Positions 16,621 to 61,000 of a stretch of DNA of 63,907 nt are shown here, in pieces (the first letter of the stretch is position 1; each line of letters begins with the position of its first letter). The notes under the pieces are model-generated. The model did not search any database. It saw nothing but the letters and a program-made list of their open reading frames with translations, and was not told where the DNA came from. Position numbers and translations under genes: made by a program. Origin of the DNA: Octopus bimaculoides (Eukaryota); NCBI RefSeq assembly GCF_001194135.2, contig NC_068993.1:49681597-49745503 (forward strand), written 5' to 3'.

Positions 16621-19125
16621 ATTTTGTCTGAAAGCATGAAAAAGTAGTTAATAAAATATTGATGATGATAATGATGATATATATATATCCTTGTTGTCAT
16701 TGATTGAATATTCACTTTTCCATAGTTGCACGGGGTAGGTAATACTTGTTGAAGCAGATTTTTCTATCAGCAGATGCTCTTCCCATCACCAATTTCCAAT
16801 TGTTTTCAGGTGAAGTAATGTCTCCCTATTTCATCAAACAATGAATAGCTTAATGGCTGAGCATGTTTATGCAGAAGATTGTAAGCAAGTGAAACTGTCA
16901 ATATTAATGGTGACTGCAATTTCAATTAGCACATGCACACTAAAGACAAAGAACAGACACACTTTTATATACATCCATGTGTATGTGAAATTTGTCAATA
17001 ACCTAGCAATGACAATAAATAAAAGATAAAAATTAAGAAGTAAACAGAAGTAAAAATGCCTAAAGTTATCATGTTTGTCCATTGGTACTCAATGAAGACA
17101 ATGGCTTCAGCCATATGGCACTTCAACAGAGGACACAACCATACAGGTGACCAGAAAATCATGACTGCTTCCATCTGTACAATGCTTCTTGTATGTCTGA
17201 AGTAGTGAAAGTAGCAGTATTTTATTCTTGTAAATGTTATACATGTAGTGGTGTCATCATAAATGTTCCTCTGTCTATGGCTCACAGAAGATTCAGTCAC
17301 TAGCAATCAATGGAAACCATGAGTGACGATGCAGCACTTTCACATAAAGATGTATTCATGTGGGGAAACAAAAAACAACTTCTTCTGCCTGTGCAACATT
17401 CAATACAACATAATTGTGTATCCTTTGCTTGCAATCCACTCTATAAGCGTACCTGGTGGGCTTCTTGACCTGTTGCATAAATTCTGTAAACAAAACGTTA
17501 ATCTAAAGTAGTGTCATTTGTTTGCAGTTTTCTGCATCATCAAATGTGGGTTGTTTGTTGTTCGATAGCCTGAGGGATTGCTTCCTTGCATGGAAGAAGA
17601 TGAGGGTTGGCATCAAAAAGAGTATGTGGGCATAGAAACCCAACCCCAATGTGTCCCATCTAAACCATGCATATATATCTTAATATGCATATCACTCCAA
17701 CAGTCTTCGTAGAGCACTGCTGCCTTCAAGTCGAAAGATGCACCAGCTACTGTGTGGTGCCATGTGTCACAATGAACTTAAATCCTAATTTAACAATGTA
17801 GCCACCATATTAAAATTTATTCCATGTGTATGTTCACACACACACACACATTTATATATGGAAGGAAATGCTTCTACTTCCTTTTGATTGTATTGAAATA
17901 TATTGGAACTAAATTGAAATTTTTTCTGAAGAAGGTTAAATTTTGGAGATTGATCTTAATACATGTACATATACATATACTTTTACATATATGCACACAT
18001 GTATCTATACATACATAGGTGAAAAGCTGTTGGTGTCTAATATAATACTATCTTTTAAACTTGAATTATTATGTTGATTAAAAAAAACAAAATGCAGAAA
18101 ATATGTGTATATATTTAAAGTACAACAACATATACTTCTATTTATTTTACTGTTTGATTTCAGCACAATTTTGTTTATAGAATTTGACAATATGTTGAAG
18201 CCTTATGCCAGTCTAATCTATTGTATGTTACTAAGGCAACACTTCTGTTGTTGAGATGTTAAGCATAACTATTCAGTCATGTTATAGAAGAAATAGAAGT
18301 TGTGTTTAATATTATTGTTAATGCACTATGGAATTATACTAGAGTACTAGAAAATATTCCGATTTGTATGTCTATGTATGGACTTACACATGTATATGTG
18401 CACACTTGTGTACAGTGTGTCTCAGACTTCTTCTTTTCAACAAATTCAGGATATTAGACTGTTCTTTTGTATGTCATTGGCTTTATGCTGATTCACTTTC
18501 AGAGACAATTTTTTGACTGGCTCACTCTGTCTTGCTGCAAAACATGTTCTACATAAAGGCACAACTCATAGCTGCAAGCAGTGGCAGCACTGTAAAAATG
18601 ACAAGAGTCTTTATTAACTTTCAGTATTGAGGCTAATCTGTATGTGTACTGCTGTTAAACAAGATGAACCTACAGCAATAGCGTCTAACTTCTGGAGTTG
18701 TATGTGATCAGTATATGAATGCTATTTAATAGCAAACTCTTGTGAAAATGCCACTTTCCCTCCTATTCATTCTCATAATCCTGTTTTCCTTCTATTATTT
18801 ACCAACTAAATTAGCTAACTTACTGACAGCTAATTGCGATGTTAGAGTTCTATGTTATACAATGTCATCATGTTTTGTCATTTTACTTGTCTGCCTTTGA
18901 TAGTTTAGTCATTTCACTCTTTTTGCTTTTTGATGTATACGTGCAATAGCTGCAGTTTGGGAGCACAACTTGAATTTCTACCTTTCTTTCTCTCTTTTTC
19001 CTTTCTTTCACTTTTCCTTCCTATAATTTTTTTTTTCCTTATATCCCATTCCTATTTGATATCCCATTCTTATTTGCTCTTTTTTATAGCTGAAATAAAA
19101 ATAGAAATTAATTTCGTCTACATAG

Positions 19126-19268
19126 AAATGGTTCTCTTTTAATAACTAACTGATTTTCATTTATGTATTCATTCGCATTTTGTTTGTTTTTTTTGTTTTT
19201 TGTTTTGTTCTCTTTTATATGAATCATTATTTTCAATGACATTTCTTTCTTTTCTTTTTCAGGTAAGT
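19126..19268 (+). other. Strong 3' splice site directly abutting a perfect 5' splice site (candidate recursive splice / ratchet point)
   Basis: No AG in 19126-19260; ACTAAC at 19145-19150 and ATGAC at 19236-19240; TTTCTTTCTTTTCTTTTTCAG|GTAAGT with AG at 19261-19262. Confidence 0.65.
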
Positions 19269-19334
19269 AACTCACTAATTCAAATACACTTTATAGCTGT
19301 GATCGTCAGAAACCAATTATTCCGCCAGCAATTG
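19263..19334 (+). other. Candidate 72-nt RS/cryptic exon (or ordinary small exon)
   Basis: Ends TTG|GTAAGA (GT at 19335). It is open only in phase 0, VSNSLIQIHFIAVIVRNQLFRQQL; the other two frames hit TAA within 8 nt. Confidence 0.5.
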
Positions 19335-20094
19335 GTAAGACAAATAGAAGCATTGCTAATATTTATCTAACAAGCTTTGTGTGTTCTTAGCAAATACACT
19401 GAAATACTATTGGTATACCACATTTAATAACTTGCTGAAGAATACAACACAGCTATGGACATTTTCATGTGTCTTCAATATTCTAACATAAATATTTTTG
19501 AGGCTCGAAAACAGAAAATGGTGAGGGTGGTTGGAATTCACTATTTTTATTGTTTTTAAAATAACGTTCCTTATTTTTTCATAAACTATTTTTTATTCTT
19601 TCCCTCAGTCTGTAGCATTTTTCATTTAATCCACATTCCATGTCAATTATTTCGATTCTTGGCTAAAATTAAGAAATAGTTTCCTTTTGTTTTCTAATGT
19701 AATCATCTCTATGCCATTTCTAACACATTTACAAACGTCTGTTCCTGTATATAACAGCCATAAAATGTTTGTTTTTATAATTTTTATGTAGATTTTTTTT
19801 TCTTATATACATCTTATAGATTTTTCTTCTTCTATAACTTTATGATAGTTTGTCTGGAATTAGTAAAAAAGTTAGAGAGAGAGAGAGAGTGTGTGTGTGT
19901 TTTTGTGTGTGTATATATGTGAGAGTGTGCATACATGCCTGTGCACAGAAAGTTACACTTGCAGTTTGAAACATCTCAAGCTGGCAAATTCATTTTTTTC
20001 ATTTATAACTCAAGAATTTCATCTCCATTTAATCATTTTTCACATAGATGAAAAATGATACTTCAATTGTTCAGTGAAAAGCTGTAATCATATC

Positions 20095-20300
20095 TACGTA
20101 TATACATACATACATACATACATACATACATACATACATACATACATACATACATACATACTTACACACACACACATACATACATATGTACATAATACAT
20201 ACATACATACATACTTACACACACATGCAGACATACATACATATATACATACATACGTACATATATACATAATACATACATACATACATACATATGTATA
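20095..20300. repeat. (TACA)n microsatellite
   Basis: Direct reading. Confidence 0.95.
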
Positions 20301-20339: not shown

Positions 20340-21400
20340 GGGAACAAATGTTTCAATTTATGGATAGATTAGTTGAGTTCTGTTTCTCTTAGAGTGAGAA
20401 CTAAATAAATCAGGTGTTGTGGGGGATATATTGAAGAGGCATGTTGTAATAACTATCCATGGCTGGTAGGCTTTGGTTGGACAAGTCCTCAAAATGTCCA
20501 GGCAACTAAATTTTGTGAGATTCAGTATTTTCAAGTCTGTGCTCATGGTCTTCAAAGGCCCTCTGAAACTGCAGAAACCAATGCTATTAAAACTCCTTTT
20601 GAACAGATGCAGTTAACAACCGAAGGAAACATTTTTAGGTAAGAATTCTAGAGGGATGATGTTCTTGGGAAGAAAGACTATGTATAATGGTTAGTATGGA
20701 TAAAGGGCATGGAAAGTTGGACACAGTGTAAATAATGAGAGAAAGAGAGAGAAGTAAGTCAGGAATGATTGACTGAAGGTGCTTTATGAAAAGATAGCTC
20801 TGAGGGACAGGGGATAGAAATTTGAATGTATTGGTAAGTGGCTTCATGCCAATTAGTCAAATGACTTTCCTTTGGACATGGTCCAGGATGTTAGGATGTG
20901 TGTGTGTGTAGTAGCAGTACCATCCTGGATGTGGGATCAGTACTCCATCATGGGTTTCTTCTGAACTTTGTAGAAGGTGAGTAATTGTTGAAGGCAGAAG
21001 TATCTTCTAGTTTTGAAGACGTAGGCCAATCCATTGATACAGTCCTTGCTATGTTGAAGATGTGCATTCACCAGAAAAGATTATCAATCATGGTGAAATC
21101 TAGCATTTGAAATGACTATGAGGATACTATTTGCAGTTTGTTAATGTATATGAGGTGGCAAAGTGCAATAATGCTTATGTGCAATAATGTTTATTTTTTA
21201 TTGTTTGTTGGGGACACGATTGGAATGATCTCTTTGAAAGATGGTTTTGAAGTTTCTATTTATCAAATCATTGCAGAATTGGCATTAGGTACCTAGGTTG
21301 CATATGGATGATGCTTGGGTATAGAAAATTAGGGAGAAGTGAACAGTGGTATTATCTGTAAAGAAGTGGGTGTTGTTCAAGATGACATCAAATCTTGTGG
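20340..21400 (-). mobile_element. Decayed CR1/L2-group LINE, RT C-terminal region
   Basis: Minus-strand peptides in the expected order: NNTHFFTDNTTV (degenerate YADD, ~21340-21385), RRYFCLQQLLTFYKVQKKPMMEY*SH (cf. LYKAQ.RP.MEYCSH, ~20930-21010) and ILDHVQRKV (~20860-20890); multiple stops and frameshifts. Confidence 0.75.
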
Positions 21401-26250: not shown

Positions 26251-28994
26251 ATATAATATATGTATGTATGTGTGTGTGTGTGTGTTTGTGTGTGTGTGTA
26301 TATANNNNNNNNNNNNNNNNNNNNNNNNNNNNNNNNNNNNNNNNNNNNNNNNNNNNNNNNNNNNNNNNNNNNNNNNNNNNNNNNNNNNNNNNNNNNNNNN
26401 NNNNNNNNNNNNNNNNNNNTTGTAGATTTTAAATATTTGAGAGACAACAATGCATAAATCGTAATTTTTTTAAAAGAGCAATGAATTCTGGGTGATTAGA
26501 ATATAACGTAGCATGAATTTAGGAAGCTTAGAATGAATCTGTATATATGGGTGTATATGTGCAGGTATAATTAAAACAAAAATGAGCTAAGAGAAATAAC
26601 TCAGACTGGCCAATGGCTTATCTTTGAACAGCATAGACAAATACAGATATATCAAATACCATATGACATAAATTCTTGATTAAAAAGTAGGTTCATCCAA
26701 GAACTACCAAATAAATTGAGACATAGTAATAAAACTATGTTTTCACCTTCCAATCAAATAATGACACTCATCCAATGGAAATTTTGGCAATCCCATTTTG
26801 CTTTGTTTCTAAGAGGTTCACTTTTTATTTGTGGTATATTATTTAAAGAATTGATCAGTTAAGCCCTGAATGAATGTATCCTATCATTTACCTCTGAATA
26901 GTTTGATTTTGTTTATTTGTGCAGTACCTGTTATTATTATTGCAGCTACATAGGTGAGCCTTGCACTCGTATTGCATATATCCTTTGCAGGTTGATGGTC
27001 ACCAATCATACGAATGCATTAATGTTAGAGCAGGTTTTGAGTCTTAGGTATTTCATCATGATTTAGAGAGATTGCATTACAGATAGGTTCATTAATACAT
27101 TTAGCTGTGTATGTATGCATAGGCAGCACACTTGTATGCATTCACATGTGTGTGTGTGTGTCTGTGTGTGTGTGTTCATCCATGCATGCCTCGGTAATGT
27201 TCATAACATATTGATAGATCACCCTCAGATAGTGAGATAGCCTGTATTAAGCCGGTCTTTAAGGTTCTCTTGTGAGATATATTTAAAGATATTCTGGGCC
27301 CATTAATCACAAGTTTTATATCTGGAAGCTTTTCAATAAATAATCTCAGTTAGATAGATACCTTCCTAAAATGCCACTTGTCTCATCTTCTTGGGAAATT
27401 TCTCCAATTTCTGTGACATGTTGCTCCCACCACTTCAGTGTTGGCATACTCATTAAAGTACTTCCCTGAATAATAACCATTATATCCACAGTGTATTACC
27501 ATATTTGCTTGTCACTTTGTCACAGCCACTCTGCTCTAGATGCAACCATATTAATTAACCTGTTAGCTATTATGTGTATTATCCATTTTGCAGCTCATTT
27601 TTATATATTTTTCAAACTTAACCCTTACAACCATCAGCCTCTGTGCAAGAACAGAGATGAAGTGCTTCTTTGTTAACCCTAACAGTTGTTGCCTCAGTAA
27701 ATGTTTTGACTATTATCTTGCTAGATAATCCTCACCACCACTGTGTACTAAATACGGTGTGGTCTTAAGATTATATTCCAAACAAATTTGATTCCTCTTC
27801 AGTGATGAAGAACTTAAAGTGTTCAGGAATAAAACCCCTGTTGATGATAAGAGATGAAATTTATTAAAATACAGCTTAGATGTAAACACTAAAAAAAGCA
27901 TTCATCTCACAAGATGAGATTAATTAGTCTGAACAATTATTATCATATTAACAACTCTTCTGAGATAGTGTTATATGATAAACAGTGTTATATGATAGAT
28001 ATCGCAGCGATAATGCAATAAGTGCAGTATCACCCCCCCCCCCCACTCTCTCGTACACACGCATACACACACTGAAGTTACGGAGTAGAAGTGCAAATGA
28101 AGGAACCTTTATGTGGTCTCTCAATCTGCTTGAAATAGCAGCTGAATCTCCACAAAATCACACCAACCATCTTTAAAATACGAAGAATACATAAGATTAT
28201 GTAAATCTAGAAACTCCTGAATAGATGGAACAGTCATGGTCGGAACACACGTGATTATAAGTTTACTAAACCAGGCTGACACAGAACAGAGCAACAGTAC
28301 CTAAGCAGCAAAATTCAATCAGAAATACCAATTATTTATTATATTCTGAGATTTTAAGTTTTGTTTTGTTTCTTTTTCCATGCAACCACCCTCATTTCTC
28401 TTAATTTCTATGTTCCTTTAATTTTTCCACCTTTTCACTCTTTCTTTTCTATTTATTTTACCTCACATCCAATATCTTCCTTCTCTGGCAACCTAGACAG
28501 CTAACTTTTTTTTTCCTCTTCCTTACATTTTCATCCATCAACTAGTTTTCCCTCTATCCATTTCTCATTGATGTTCTTCTATTTCCTCCTCCTCCTTCTT
28601 CCACCTCCTCCAAAATATTTCCCTGACAATCAACTTCTAATTTCATCATCAACTAATTTCATCAACTTCCCCTTCAGCTCCTCAACCCACCATATTTTTC
28701 GCAATATTTTTTTTCTTCATAGCTGTCTTCTTTGGTCTCTGTATAGGATGGGGTGACAAAGCAACAAATTATCTGCTATTTTACTGCTTTAGATAACAGC
28801 TGGGGTACTGAGGGGCAGGGGAAAGGGATGTGGTGTGGTGTGGTGTGGTGAAATGTTTACCTCCTGCTGGCAATTTATAGTTAATAAAGTGTTTGACTTG
28901 AAAGAAATAAAAGAACACTCTTACATCACCTTTGTCACTCACCCTCCTGCTCTCAATATCCTGGCTATCAGCACTGATAACTTAGCAATGGTGG

Positions 28995-39120: not shown

Positions 39121-39400
39121 ATTCTCTGGGAACACACAAAAGCCCTTTTCAGAGTCATTTACTTTGAATTGTTATCTCATATCTGATTAGCCTCTTATTA
39201 CATAACATGCTTCACGATTTTAGTATACATACCTTATTAGTATTTCCTCCTAAGTTCTGTATACTCTGGGAACGCATTAAAGCCCTTTTTGGGGCTACTT
39301 TATTTGAATTCTTACTATCAGGTAACTAATTTCTTGTTATTACATAACTGACTTCACAATTTGGGTATTTATAACTTATTGGGAATTCTTAAAAACAAGA
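39121..39400. repeat. Diverged two-copy tandem repeat, period 140 bp
   Basis: CTCTGGGAAC at 39124 and 39264, each followed by AAAGCCCTTT, TTTGAATT, TTATTACATAAC and CTTCAC.ATT. Confidence 0.75.
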
Positions 39401-40419
39401 TCTTGTGTAAGACAGTTCAGTATTCTCTGTAAATANNNNNNNNNNNNNNNNNNNNNNNNNNNNNNNNNNNNNNNNNNNNNNNNNNNNNNNNNNNNNNNNN
39501 NNNNNNNNNNNNNNNNNNNNNNNNNNNNNNNNNNNNNNNNNNNNNNNNNNNNNNNNNNNNNNNNNNNNNNNNNNNNNNNNNNNNNNNNNNNNNNNNNNNN
39601 NNNNNNNNNNNNNNNNNNNNNNNNNNNNNNNNNNNNNNNNNNNNNNNNNNNNNNNNNNNNNNNNNNNNNNNNNNNNNNNNNNNNNNNNNNNNNNNNNNNN
39701 NNNNNNNNNNNNNNNNNNNNNNNNNNNNNNNNNNNNNNNNNNNNNNNNNNNNNNNNNNNTATATATAAATAACAAATGCTAGTCTGAGATTCAATGAAAA
39801 ATACATATTTATCCTTTTTGAACTGGGACTGCAAATAGAAATGACAAATGCAATAAAGTAAAAAAATACATGTATCACGCACATGCACACACACACACAC
39901 ACGTTAGCTCAAAACCTGTTGTGCCCCTTATATAGTTCCTACAATAGGTGTGAGGTTATGGCGCTGGTTTATGTAGTCATGCAGTGAAATATCTTACTAC
40001 AACTGTCAATTTTTGTCTCTGAGCTTAGCCTGAAGCACTGCTTGCCCCATTTTGCCTGACTGACATAAGCATCTTTTCCACTGATACTTCATAGTAGAGT
40101 GGTTAGTGGAAGGAAGGACATCAAGTAAAATCTATTGGTCCAATGATAAAAATTTTAACCAACCGTACTACTAGCATAGGCATAAATCAGCTGTGCATCA
40201 GTGTGTGCATGTATGTGCAGGCAAGCTTGCATGCAGCAACCACATCTCTAGTTACCACATGTAAAAATAAATCACCAAACTTTGCACACTGTGTGTTTTG
40301 AACACTGTTTATAAGTTTTTGTGCTGATCCTGACCAGCGACTATTGAACCTGACCAAATCTTATTCAATGCTTTATCTAAATAGGCTTAGCTGATTTCTA
40401 TACTTTTGGTCTTTTATAT

Positions 40420-48099: not shown

Positions 48100-49085
48100 A
48101 TCTGTTCTTGTCAGACCTGGAGAAGCATGAGCTTCACCAAGTTTAAAAGCATCCAAGGCATACATACCGCTTTGTCGCACCAATCCTGATTTTGTGGTCA
48201 TTAACCTTTCCGTTACTGTATTTATTTTGGGGTGCTTTCTGTTTCTTTCAATTAATTTTACATATAACAAAGGATTTTGTAAAATAACTTAGTTATCATT
48301 AAGCTAGTGTTAGGGACATAAATTGTGACTCGAGTTTAGTGGAAGATTTTAATTCAAAACTAATGAAAAGACATTTGTACTACAGAGCTGGTTTCAGCCT
48401 GGTTGGTATCAAAAGGGTTAAGGATACTAAGAGTAGATGAATAGCCATACTAGTTATGCACCAAAGAGCAATCAGTGAGGTATAAAAGTTAGCAGTGAAT
48501 GATGTGATGAATTTAGCACACAAGTCGGGGTACATCAAAACTCTTTTTTCAGCTCTCTTCTATTTTTTTATAGCATTGAAAGTCATATCAGAGGAATTCA
48601 AGCTTCGCTGCCCTGGGAACTCCTGTATGCTGACAACTCAGTTCATATTGCAGGGTCTGTAAAGGAATGAAATAAGAAATTCCAGATATGATTGCAAAAC
48701 CTGTAACTGAAGAGCCTTAAAATAAACTTAACAAAAACAAAAATTTCTCCAAGTAGGAAGGAAGACAGACCCCTTATTGCCTAAGGAAAATAACTGTACT
48801 CTATTTGCAAGAAAGGCATTAGTCAAAATTCTATGTGTGCCTAGTGTAAACGCATAGAAATGGTGTGATATTACAGGCAAACTATCAGGAGGTGCACCAG
48901 AGAAATAAGTAATAAGGACATTCAGGAAATAAATGCTCTCAAATATCCAGATGCCTCTTGAGAAATAGTTGATTGCTTTTCTTACTTCGGTGACCTGATT
49001 AGCAAGATGCATTCCTCTGACCCACTGGATGCTGTCAAACTCTCCAACCCATGCCAGCATGGAAAACGGATGTAAAATCATGATG
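48100..49085 (+). mobile_element. Internally deleted RTE LINE (RT fragment plus 3' tail), interrupted by a MITE
   Basis: LILWS|LRILRVDE*, DEFSTQVGVHQ..FSSLLF..KVISEEFK..CP(W)ELLYAD with frameshifts, EIVDCFSYFGDLIS, then the tail CCAACCCATGCCAGCATGGAAAACGGATG. Confidence 0.85.
48201..48421. mobile_element. piggyBac-type non-autonomous element with TTAA target-site duplication
   Basis: TTAA (48201-48204) CCTTTCCGTTAC ... GGTATCAAAAGGG TTAA (48418-48421); removing it restores the LINE reading frame. Confidence 0.8.
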
Positions 49086-53275: not shown

Positions 53276-53364
53276 AACACATCTGTTGGTAATAATAGTG
53301 TGATGATGGTCTTGGCAGTGGTGTGCTATAAAGATATCCTGGCAGTTTTAATGACTATTCTGTT

Positions 53365-53560
53365 CTTGTTTAGTACCAGGTAAGTCCTGATCGAGCAGTT
53401 TTATAATCAGGAGCATTCAAATGTTGACTATCCTGCCTTTTATGGGTATGTAAGACTGTATTATCGAATGGTTTCTTCCCTTTTTTAAGATGGTTAGGTG
53501 TGGTCTAAGAGAAATTTGACTGCTATTTCTAGCAGATCGAATAACCAGATAGAGACTTTG
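53365..53560 (+). mobile_element. Unclassified ~200-bp interspersed repeat (family D); orientation arbitrary
   Basis: TTAG..CCAGGT.AG.CC...TGATC...CTATTTCTAGCAG pattern; related copies at ~12660-12780, ~30115-30290, ~37660-37785 and ~57955-58100 (same orientation) and ~45020-45190, ~46470-46610 and ~53975-54150 (reverse). Confidence 0.6.
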
Positions 53561-59459: not shown

Positions 59460-59679
59460 TTATTTAAGCCAGCCATATCCAGCCAAAATATACTACCAAT
59501 AGTTTTATGCTCAAACTGGCCAGGTCTGGCCTCTCACACTTACCTTATAGTATTATTCTAGAAATAAACAATCATGTCATTGAAATCTCAAAGTTACAAG
59601 ATAATGCATGATTAATTCAAAGGAATATGAGTAAATAAGCATTACATTGGACAGGGTGATCTGAATGTTAAAGGGTTAA
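59460..59679. mobile_element. piggyBac-type MITE (second family), left end degraded
   Basis: Ends CTGAATGTTAAAGGG-TTAA, the same AAAGGG|TTAA terminus as 48411-48421. The interior CCATATCCAGCCAAAAT...CTCAAACTGGCCAG matches a common octopus repeat as I recall it. Confidence 0.6.
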
Positions 59680-60569: not shown

Positions 60570-61000
60570 AGTTCAAACGCTTGCTGTGACATGGTTTCTA
60601 TCACTGACTGCTGTTTCTAATTCCGGCCACTTCACAGAGTGGGTTGGGTGTGTTTTGTTTTTTGTAGTACCACCACTGATAAAGGTGACCAAGTACTGCA
60701 AGACAAGACTCCTAAACTGAGTGAGGTTATAGTATTGACGGATAATAAAGTAAGATAAAGGGACAGGAGCAGGTATCTTACTTAAGAAATGACCACATGG
60801 TTTGCTCATCTCGAAAGAGAGAGAGGGAGGTGTGAGGTCAAAGATGGAATAAGATAGAACAGATATGGTGCATGGGTAGGTAAGTGCACAAGAGTGAACA
60901 TAGTATGACAGATGATTGGAGATAGGGAGTGAATTGGATGCAGAGAATGTCACTTCAATAGAGGGGAAGTGAGAGAAGGAAATAGAGTACCACAAAAGAT
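60570..61000 (-). mobile_element. Probable decayed CR1-group LINE fragment (endonuclease-RT linker)
   Basis: ORF 60573-60995 ends IIRQYYNLTQFRSLV...KWPELETAVSDRNH, resembling the linker motifs ..Y..ADW..FR.. and PW....C..A...RN; similarity judged by eye only. Confidence 0.45.

Follow-up and report, generated by a model that had tools for sequence, protein, structure and literature searches.

A candidate recursive splice site and two same-strand companions in a 64-kb stretch of octopus DNA

The closest known kind of element to the one described in this study is the ratchet point with a cryptic RS exon found in flies, as in Ubx, kuz and Bx (Hatton 1998; Burnette 2005; Duff 2015; Joseph 2018; Pai 2018). 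In these cases, an acceptor and a donor are placed in tandem within a long intron and are followed by a short cryptic exon that is ended by a downstream donor (PMC8605326). The donor regenerated at the junction is generally the stronger of the two and its weakening leads to inclusion of the cryptic exon (PMC8605326). The ratchet core is ultraconserved, and the body of the cryptic exon, which is variable in length and measures roughly 50 nt, is poorly conserved, usually out of frame and typically interrupted by stops in all frames (PMC8605326). Thymines at positions -5 and -6 are a nearly invariant feature, shared by 196 of the 197 sites in flies (99.5%; bioRxiv 10.1101/006163). A related arrangement has been described in long neuronal genes of vertebrates (Sibley 2015; Zhang 2018, PMC6110456), where the cryptic exon is recognised by exon definition, where regenerated and downstream donors compete and where inclusion results in a poison exon. 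In large vertebrate genomes, matches to the motif greatly exceed the sites that are used, with about ten recursive events reported in mouse, a rare occurrence in mouse brain and a small number of fully validated vertebrate sites, of which nine were noted (PMC8797253). A further class concerns annotated RS exons, which start with a donor-like GTAAGT and reside in mature annotated mRNAs (Blazquez 2018, PMC6224609), and whose regenerated donor is described as repressed by the exon junction complex. Finally, the migratory locust provides a recursive site that was predicted from the fly motif in its 230-kb NPF1 intron and supported by a U2AF65 pull-down (PMC8892266). Within the searchable literature, no paper pairs recursive splicing with octopus, and cephalopod and mollusc terms appear as incidental co-mentions only, in line with a first-pass annotation of the DNA investigated here, which knew of no description in cephalopods.

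The window, by which we refer to the whole 63.9-kb stretch of Octopus bimaculoides DNA that was analysed, is part of a draft animal genome rather than of a microbial one, is AT-rich (GC ~0.33) and contains on its + strand, at position 19263, a site with the anatomy of a recursive splice site that is complete and of high quality (site 1). Upstream of this position, a T-rich zone of 135 nt (19126-19260, 60% T) follows an AG at 19124-25 and is itself free of AG, a spacing reached by only 56 of the 7040 AG-to-AG gaps in the window. The zone harbours two branch-point candidates, a distal ACTAAC (19145-19150) located ~112 nt before the AG, which is usable only because no other AG intervenes, and a proximal ATGAC (19236-19240), whose A at 19239 precedes the AG by 22 nt. 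The candidate 3' splice site (19242-19262) is composed of 19 unbroken pyrimidines (19242-19260), with T at both -5 and -6, and a CAG at 19260-62; AGs preceded by at least 15 pyrimidines are found only eight times on both strands of the window. This CAG directly abuts a GTAAGT (19263-19268), the 5' splice site that could be regenerated after splicing to 19263 and that fits the U1-complementary consensus from +1 to +7. The same hexamer opens a candidate cryptic RS exon of 72 nt (19263-19334) that ends at a second donor, TTG/GTAAGAC (19335-19341, the slash marking the boundary), whose GTAAGA (19335-40) is weaker, with a consensus match from +1 to +5 compared to the match up to +6/+7 in GTAAGT. 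Each of these elements, the AG-free zone, both branch-point candidates, the pure pyrimidine tract with its abutting CAG and GTAAGT, and the second donor 72 nt further on, had been claimed in the first-pass annotation and was recovered at the same place. Site 1 occurs once in the window, with low-complexity matches as the only result of a self-BLAST of positions 18500-20100, and an exact-match scan of metagenome contigs did not yield a match. Two long reading frames of the window, looked up as exact sequences, were likewise not recorded elsewhere.

In its build, site 1 thus resembles the fly ratchet points, with which it shares the (Y)nCAG/GTAAGT tandem, the TT at -5/-6, the short cryptic exon and the weaker donor at its end, and its features make it a candidate member of this class. 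It also resembles the locust NPF1 site, likewise proposed on the basis of the fly motif and likewise from a non-model invertebrate whose introns have expanded greatly. In contrast to the fly sites, and to the locust site with its known intron and its U2AF65 pull-down (PMC8892266), the octopus sites are predicted from sequence, and they belong to a different phylum, the molluscs within the Lophotrochozoa.

How unusual such a site is depends on the null model. Whole-window shuffles, in which Y10-AG-GTRAGT was obtained in 0 of 100 cases, are too lenient since they destroy the real pyrimidine tracts, and we have for this reason relied on a count conditional on acceptor sites and on order-3 and order-5 Markov simulations. 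Both strands together hold 63 strong acceptor-like sites, which, at a first-order probability of 3.2e-4 for a GTAAGT after the AG, leads to an expectation of 0.02, and site 1 is thus unusual, exceeding what chance would provide in one window. Nevertheless, if 0.02 sites per 64 kb are extrapolated to a genome size of a few Gb, the short core motif alone would arise by chance several hundred times, and a single site therefore proves little. It is this consideration that lends weight to the view that the elements resemble splice sites without being under selection, in non-coding DNA that is T-rich and of low complexity and where no splicing takes place. Pyrimidine tracts are plentiful, with 299 YAG sites in the window preceded by at least 70% pyrimidines, site 1 was chosen by eye, with its regularities noticed later, and searches of window frames and of the focal peptide have not provided any protein evidence. 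We regard such an accidental origin as unlikely, yet still as an explanation that carries appreciable weight, in light of the recurrence of the arrangement described in the following.

Contrary to the first-pass annotation, which had noticed no other YnCAG/GTAAGT outside repeats on either strand, a second CAGGTAAGT is found at 53377-53385 (+). It belongs to site 2, whose acceptor (53350-53379, +) combines a branch-like AATGAC, a stretch with 70% pyrimidines and a CAG at 53377-79. The site reads ttttAATGACtattctgttcttgtttagtaCCAG immediately followed by GTAAGT (53380-85), which opens a segment of 70 nt (53380-53449) that contains stops in all three frames and ends at the downstream donor TAT/GTAAGAC (53450-53456). 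The motif AATGAC occupies near-equivalent places in both sites, with its branch A located 24 nt before the AG in site 2 and 22 nt in site 1. An extra AG at 53372-73 (-8/-7) could compete with the acceptor of site 2, and its use would leave the six nucleotides TACCAG in the product. The positions -5/-6 are occupied by T and A, so that the fly-type TT seen in site 1 is absent. A third arrangement, site 3 (39319-39406, +), is weak. Its CAG/GTAACT (39319-27), which follows a stretch with 70% pyrimidines, opens an 85-nt segment at position 39322 that ends at TGT/GTAAGAC (39407-39413), and an N gap follows 24 nt after the site. Its regenerated donor is poor because of the C at +5, which reverses the order of donor strength, and, following the competition rule, the 85-nt segment would be expected to be included rather than skipped. 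The fly-type tandem of acceptor and donor is thus found in site 1, in site 2 with an extra AG, and in site 3 as GTAACT only, and a short candidate cryptic exon with a weaker downstream donor characterizes sites 1 and 2 (72 and 70 nt).

The three sites are exactly those retrieved from both strands with a relaxed rule, which asks for a YAG with 65% or more pyrimidines and tolerates a single mismatch in GTRAGT. All three reside on the + strand and none on the - strand. The number of such relaxed cores alone, three compared to an expectation of 3.1, is at the level of chance and would as such be accounted for by look-alikes. What argues against this explanation is the common build of the sites, where a pyrimidine-rich acceptor is in each case followed by a segment of 70-85 nt ending at the same GTAAGAC. 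This heptamer occurs only eight times in the 128 kb of both strands, five times on the + strand and three times on the - strand, and three of the five + strand copies are located 70-85 nt past the sites of the relaxed scan. Under a composite rule that requires a YAG with 70% or more pyrimidines, a GTRAGT and, 25-120 nt further downstream, a GTRAG, two canonical sites were observed, both on the + strand and none on the - strand, compared to about 0.03-0.05 expected by chance. In detail, the expectation is 0.027 in an analytic estimate and 0.014 and 0.046 in order-3 and order-5 Markov simulations, where two sites were reached in 0 of 700 runs, which corresponds to a Poisson P of about 4e-4 to 1e-3. 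Similarly, a rule derived from site 1 (GTAAGA at 72 ± 15 nt) would predict about 0.03 sites in the rest of the window, a value derived as the product of 3.1 relaxed core sites and a factor of ~0.009, whereas two were found. Since the thresholds and the regularity in the GTAAGA(C) motif and its distance were recognised post hoc, after site 1 had been picked by eye, these small P values are optimistic, and we place the true significance at roughly 1e-2 to 1e-3 and not at 1e-6. With this reservation, the two companion sites on the same strand plausibly strengthen a reading in terms of recursive splicing. The occurrence of several sites, putatively within one very long intron and tens of kb apart, is again reminiscent of flies, as is a cryptic exon that is mostly not frame-preserving, here exemplified by site 2. 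Conversely, the octopus segments are with 70-85 nt somewhat longer than the roughly 50 nt quoted for flies, and the GTAAGAC donor common to all three sites is not a described fly feature.

Other splice-like sequences are scattered over the window. Octamers AG/GTAAGT are also present at 60878-60885 (+) and 59538-59545 (-), where they are not preceded by a pyrimidine tract and are donor-like only, and AGGTRAG is found 11 times on the + strand compared to three times on the - strand. A U1 gene was considered as a source of the - strand ACTTACCTG and was excluded by empty Rfam and tRNA scans. At 26940-26960 (+), on the same strand as site 1, ttattattattgcagCTACATAG is followed by GTGAGC, thus placing an AG/GTGAGC 8 nt after a reasonably good acceptor, which could be a microexon-like or a degenerate ratchet arrangement. 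Finally, an open frame of 77 residues at 20409-20644 (+), IRCCGGYIEE...EGNIFR, stops exactly at TTTTTAG/GTAAGA (20637-44) and has the look of an exon end; it shows no Pfam match and no homologue among 5.8 billion proteins.

A shared build could also reflect descent of the units from a dispersed repeat, with high divergence among the copies, or an artefact of the assembly, with unit ends that happen to resemble splice sites. The window offers ample material for such an origin, as it is rich in SINE-like copies, in remnants of LINE reverse transcriptases (2330-2743 on the - strand and 48486-48659 on the + strand) and in tandem and microsatellite arrays, of which there are more than 100, besides ten N gaps, one of them next to site 3. 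However, self-BLAST and alignments of the three units did not reveal any similarity beyond short motifs. The units are thus not copies of a repeat, which would be alignable over their full length, their ends form neither inverted nor long direct repeats, and scans of the window did not detect any Rfam family, tRNA or tRNA-like element. Taken together, we consider an origin from repeats or misassembly as very improbable. The remnant at 2330-2743 (-) has 3,062 relatives in our protein search, and the best named ones originate from Argonauta hians (GAB1597266.1, 70% identity) and Octopus bimaculoides (UniRef A0A0L8GY88, 65%), so that its octopod-like character bears out the attribution of the DNA to a mollusc, which the first-pass annotation had made from the letters. 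One named relative is annotated as 'cadherin domain-containing protein' and is probably a gene model that has swallowed a transposon. A 242-nt unit that includes a 10-N gap (1939-1948) occurs in two copies of 100% identity at 1707-2180, and this duplication may be very recent or may have arisen as an artefact of the assembly. The unit carries a SINE-like sequence, which we take to be a common octopus SINE.

Instead of being removed as part of a ratchet, the segments might be retained as ordinary exons, cassette, poison or non-coding, of a + strand mRNA or lncRNA, which would start with GTAAGT and thus correspond to expressed RS exons rather than to zero-length ratchets. The acceptor-donor spacing of 70-85 nt is exon-like in each segment, the stronger downstream donor of site 3 would favour inclusion, and the number of expressed RS exons in mammals may reach into the thousands (PMC8605326; PMC6224609). 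The 72-nt segment of site 1 would comply with such an exon since its length is a multiple of three and since it is open in frame 0, and in this frame only (VSNSLIQIHFIAVIVRNQLFRQQL), a likeness it shares with the annotated RS exons besides the GTAAGT at its start. The first-pass annotation had emphasized both features, which are indeed found in the sequence but carry little weight, as an open frame of this kind would occur in an estimated ~6% of cases by chance and was chosen post hoc. Its proposal of a regulated coding switch is unsupported: no protein in a collection of 5.8 billion, which includes the UniRef proteins of O. bimaculoides, has three 5-residue words in common with the frame-0 peptide of the segment and its flanks, and the segment is for this reason not a known coding exon. 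A reading of the 24-residue peptide as an IQ motif was dropped, since the R and G positions of the consensus are occupied by I and A. In contrast to the annotated RS exons (Blazquez 2018, PMC6224609), which are contained in mature annotated mRNAs, the peptide of the 72-nt segment is found in no known protein of the collection, and the 70-nt companion is stopped in every frame. The strength of GTAAGT at sites 1 and 2 further argues against inclusion, as the equivalent order of donors predicts skipping in flies (PMC8605326). We thus regard ordinary included exons as a rather improbable explanation.

The preferred reading of the sites as ratchet points relies on their location, in sense orientation, in a long intron (more than 10-40 kb), and several properties of the window bear on this assumption. 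A Pfam scan of 83 open frames on the + strand of the window did not provide a match. No homologue was detected among the 5.8 billion proteins, neither for stop-to-stop frames of the + strand between 1 and 30 kb, including the focal frame, nor for the most protein-like frames of the + strand between 30 and 64 kb and of the - strand. In total, the searched frames, each of at least 30 residues, comprise ~8,800 residues from both strands, compared to ~10,000 residues in frames of poorer composition that lay outside the selection. The 64 kb of the window are devoid of CpG-island-like regions, and the GC-richest bins coincide with SINE copies. The absence of coding exons, Pfam domains, homologues, RNA genes and CpG islands from these searches is consistent with a long intron. 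The ratio of observed to expected CpG is 0.28 across the window, and a transcribed gene body that is methylated in the germline could account for this strong depletion. On the + strand, T exceeds A by 4.9% after masking of simple repeats, in 23 of 31 bins of 2 kb, while G and C are about equal, and runs of eight T outnumber those of eight A by 74 to 36. Animal introns show this polarity of T over A on their sense strand, and the observed skew thus weakly favours transcription of the + strand. An asymmetry between AATAAA and TTTATT (79 versus 125) was discarded as a clue to the strand, since it is fully accounted for by the A/T skew. As an alternative to a host intron on the + strand, the window could be intergenic or transcribed from the - strand.

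From the anatomy of site 1, its rarity, its recurrence on the same strand and the absence of detected coding exons we infer transcription of the + strand, a host intron and a plausible sequence of splicing steps. The window would be located inside a single + strand intron of an octopod gene, with a length of more than 64 kb, which would be excised in segments at recursive splice sites. At site 1, the acceptor, with its putative branch point near 19239, its 19-nt tract and its CAG, would together with the donor at 19335 define the 72-nt cryptic exon by exon definition, as in the described vertebrate sites. The upstream exon would subsequently be joined to position 19263, which would place it directly before GTAAGT. 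As the stronger of the two, this regenerated donor would then out-compete the GTAAGA at 19335, and the 72 nt would be lost with the next intron segment, leaving no trace in the mRNA. Position 53380 with its 70-nt segment, and perhaps also 39322 with its 85-nt segment, would act in a similar manner, and the resulting intron segments would measure ~20 and 14 kb, or 34 kb if site 3 were not used. Competition between regenerated and downstream donors, a poison-exon outcome upon inclusion, and a setting of a large genome with very long introns would all be shared with the vertebrate sites. We consider functional recursive splicing at this locus to be a serious possibility, to which we assign slightly less than even probability. 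It may further be proposed, as a tentative generalisation that we hold with distinctly less than even confidence, that a stereotyped cassette serves routinely to divide the giant introns of octopods into segments of 15-35 kb, consisting of a strong acceptor fused to GTAAGT, a cryptic exon of 70-85 nt and a GTAAGAC donor.

Collectively, our analysis has defined a candidate ratchet point whose implications would extend beyond the described locus. If its resemblance to a splice site were due to chance, it would illustrate that the motif alone is a poor predictor of usage in a large AT-rich genome. If confirmed, the site would supply a motif that can be used for genome-wide scanning, namely a ratchet point followed after about 75 nt by GTAAGAC, and confirmed sites would flag cryptic poison exons of relevance for annotation pipelines and for the interpretation of variants. 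Cephalopods combine very large genomes and very long introns with large nervous systems, and it is under such conditions that recursive splicing is thought to matter for accurate splicing and for proper levels of long neuronal transcripts. Documented cases of recursive splicing come from flies and vertebrates, with a predicted one in locust, and a confirmed octopus site would add the third great branch of the bilaterians, as the first case described in a mollusc or any lophotrochozoan. If the proposed cassette were in routine use in octopods, the mechanism would by implication date back to the bilaterian ancestor and would have been scaled up as the introns of cephalopods expanded.
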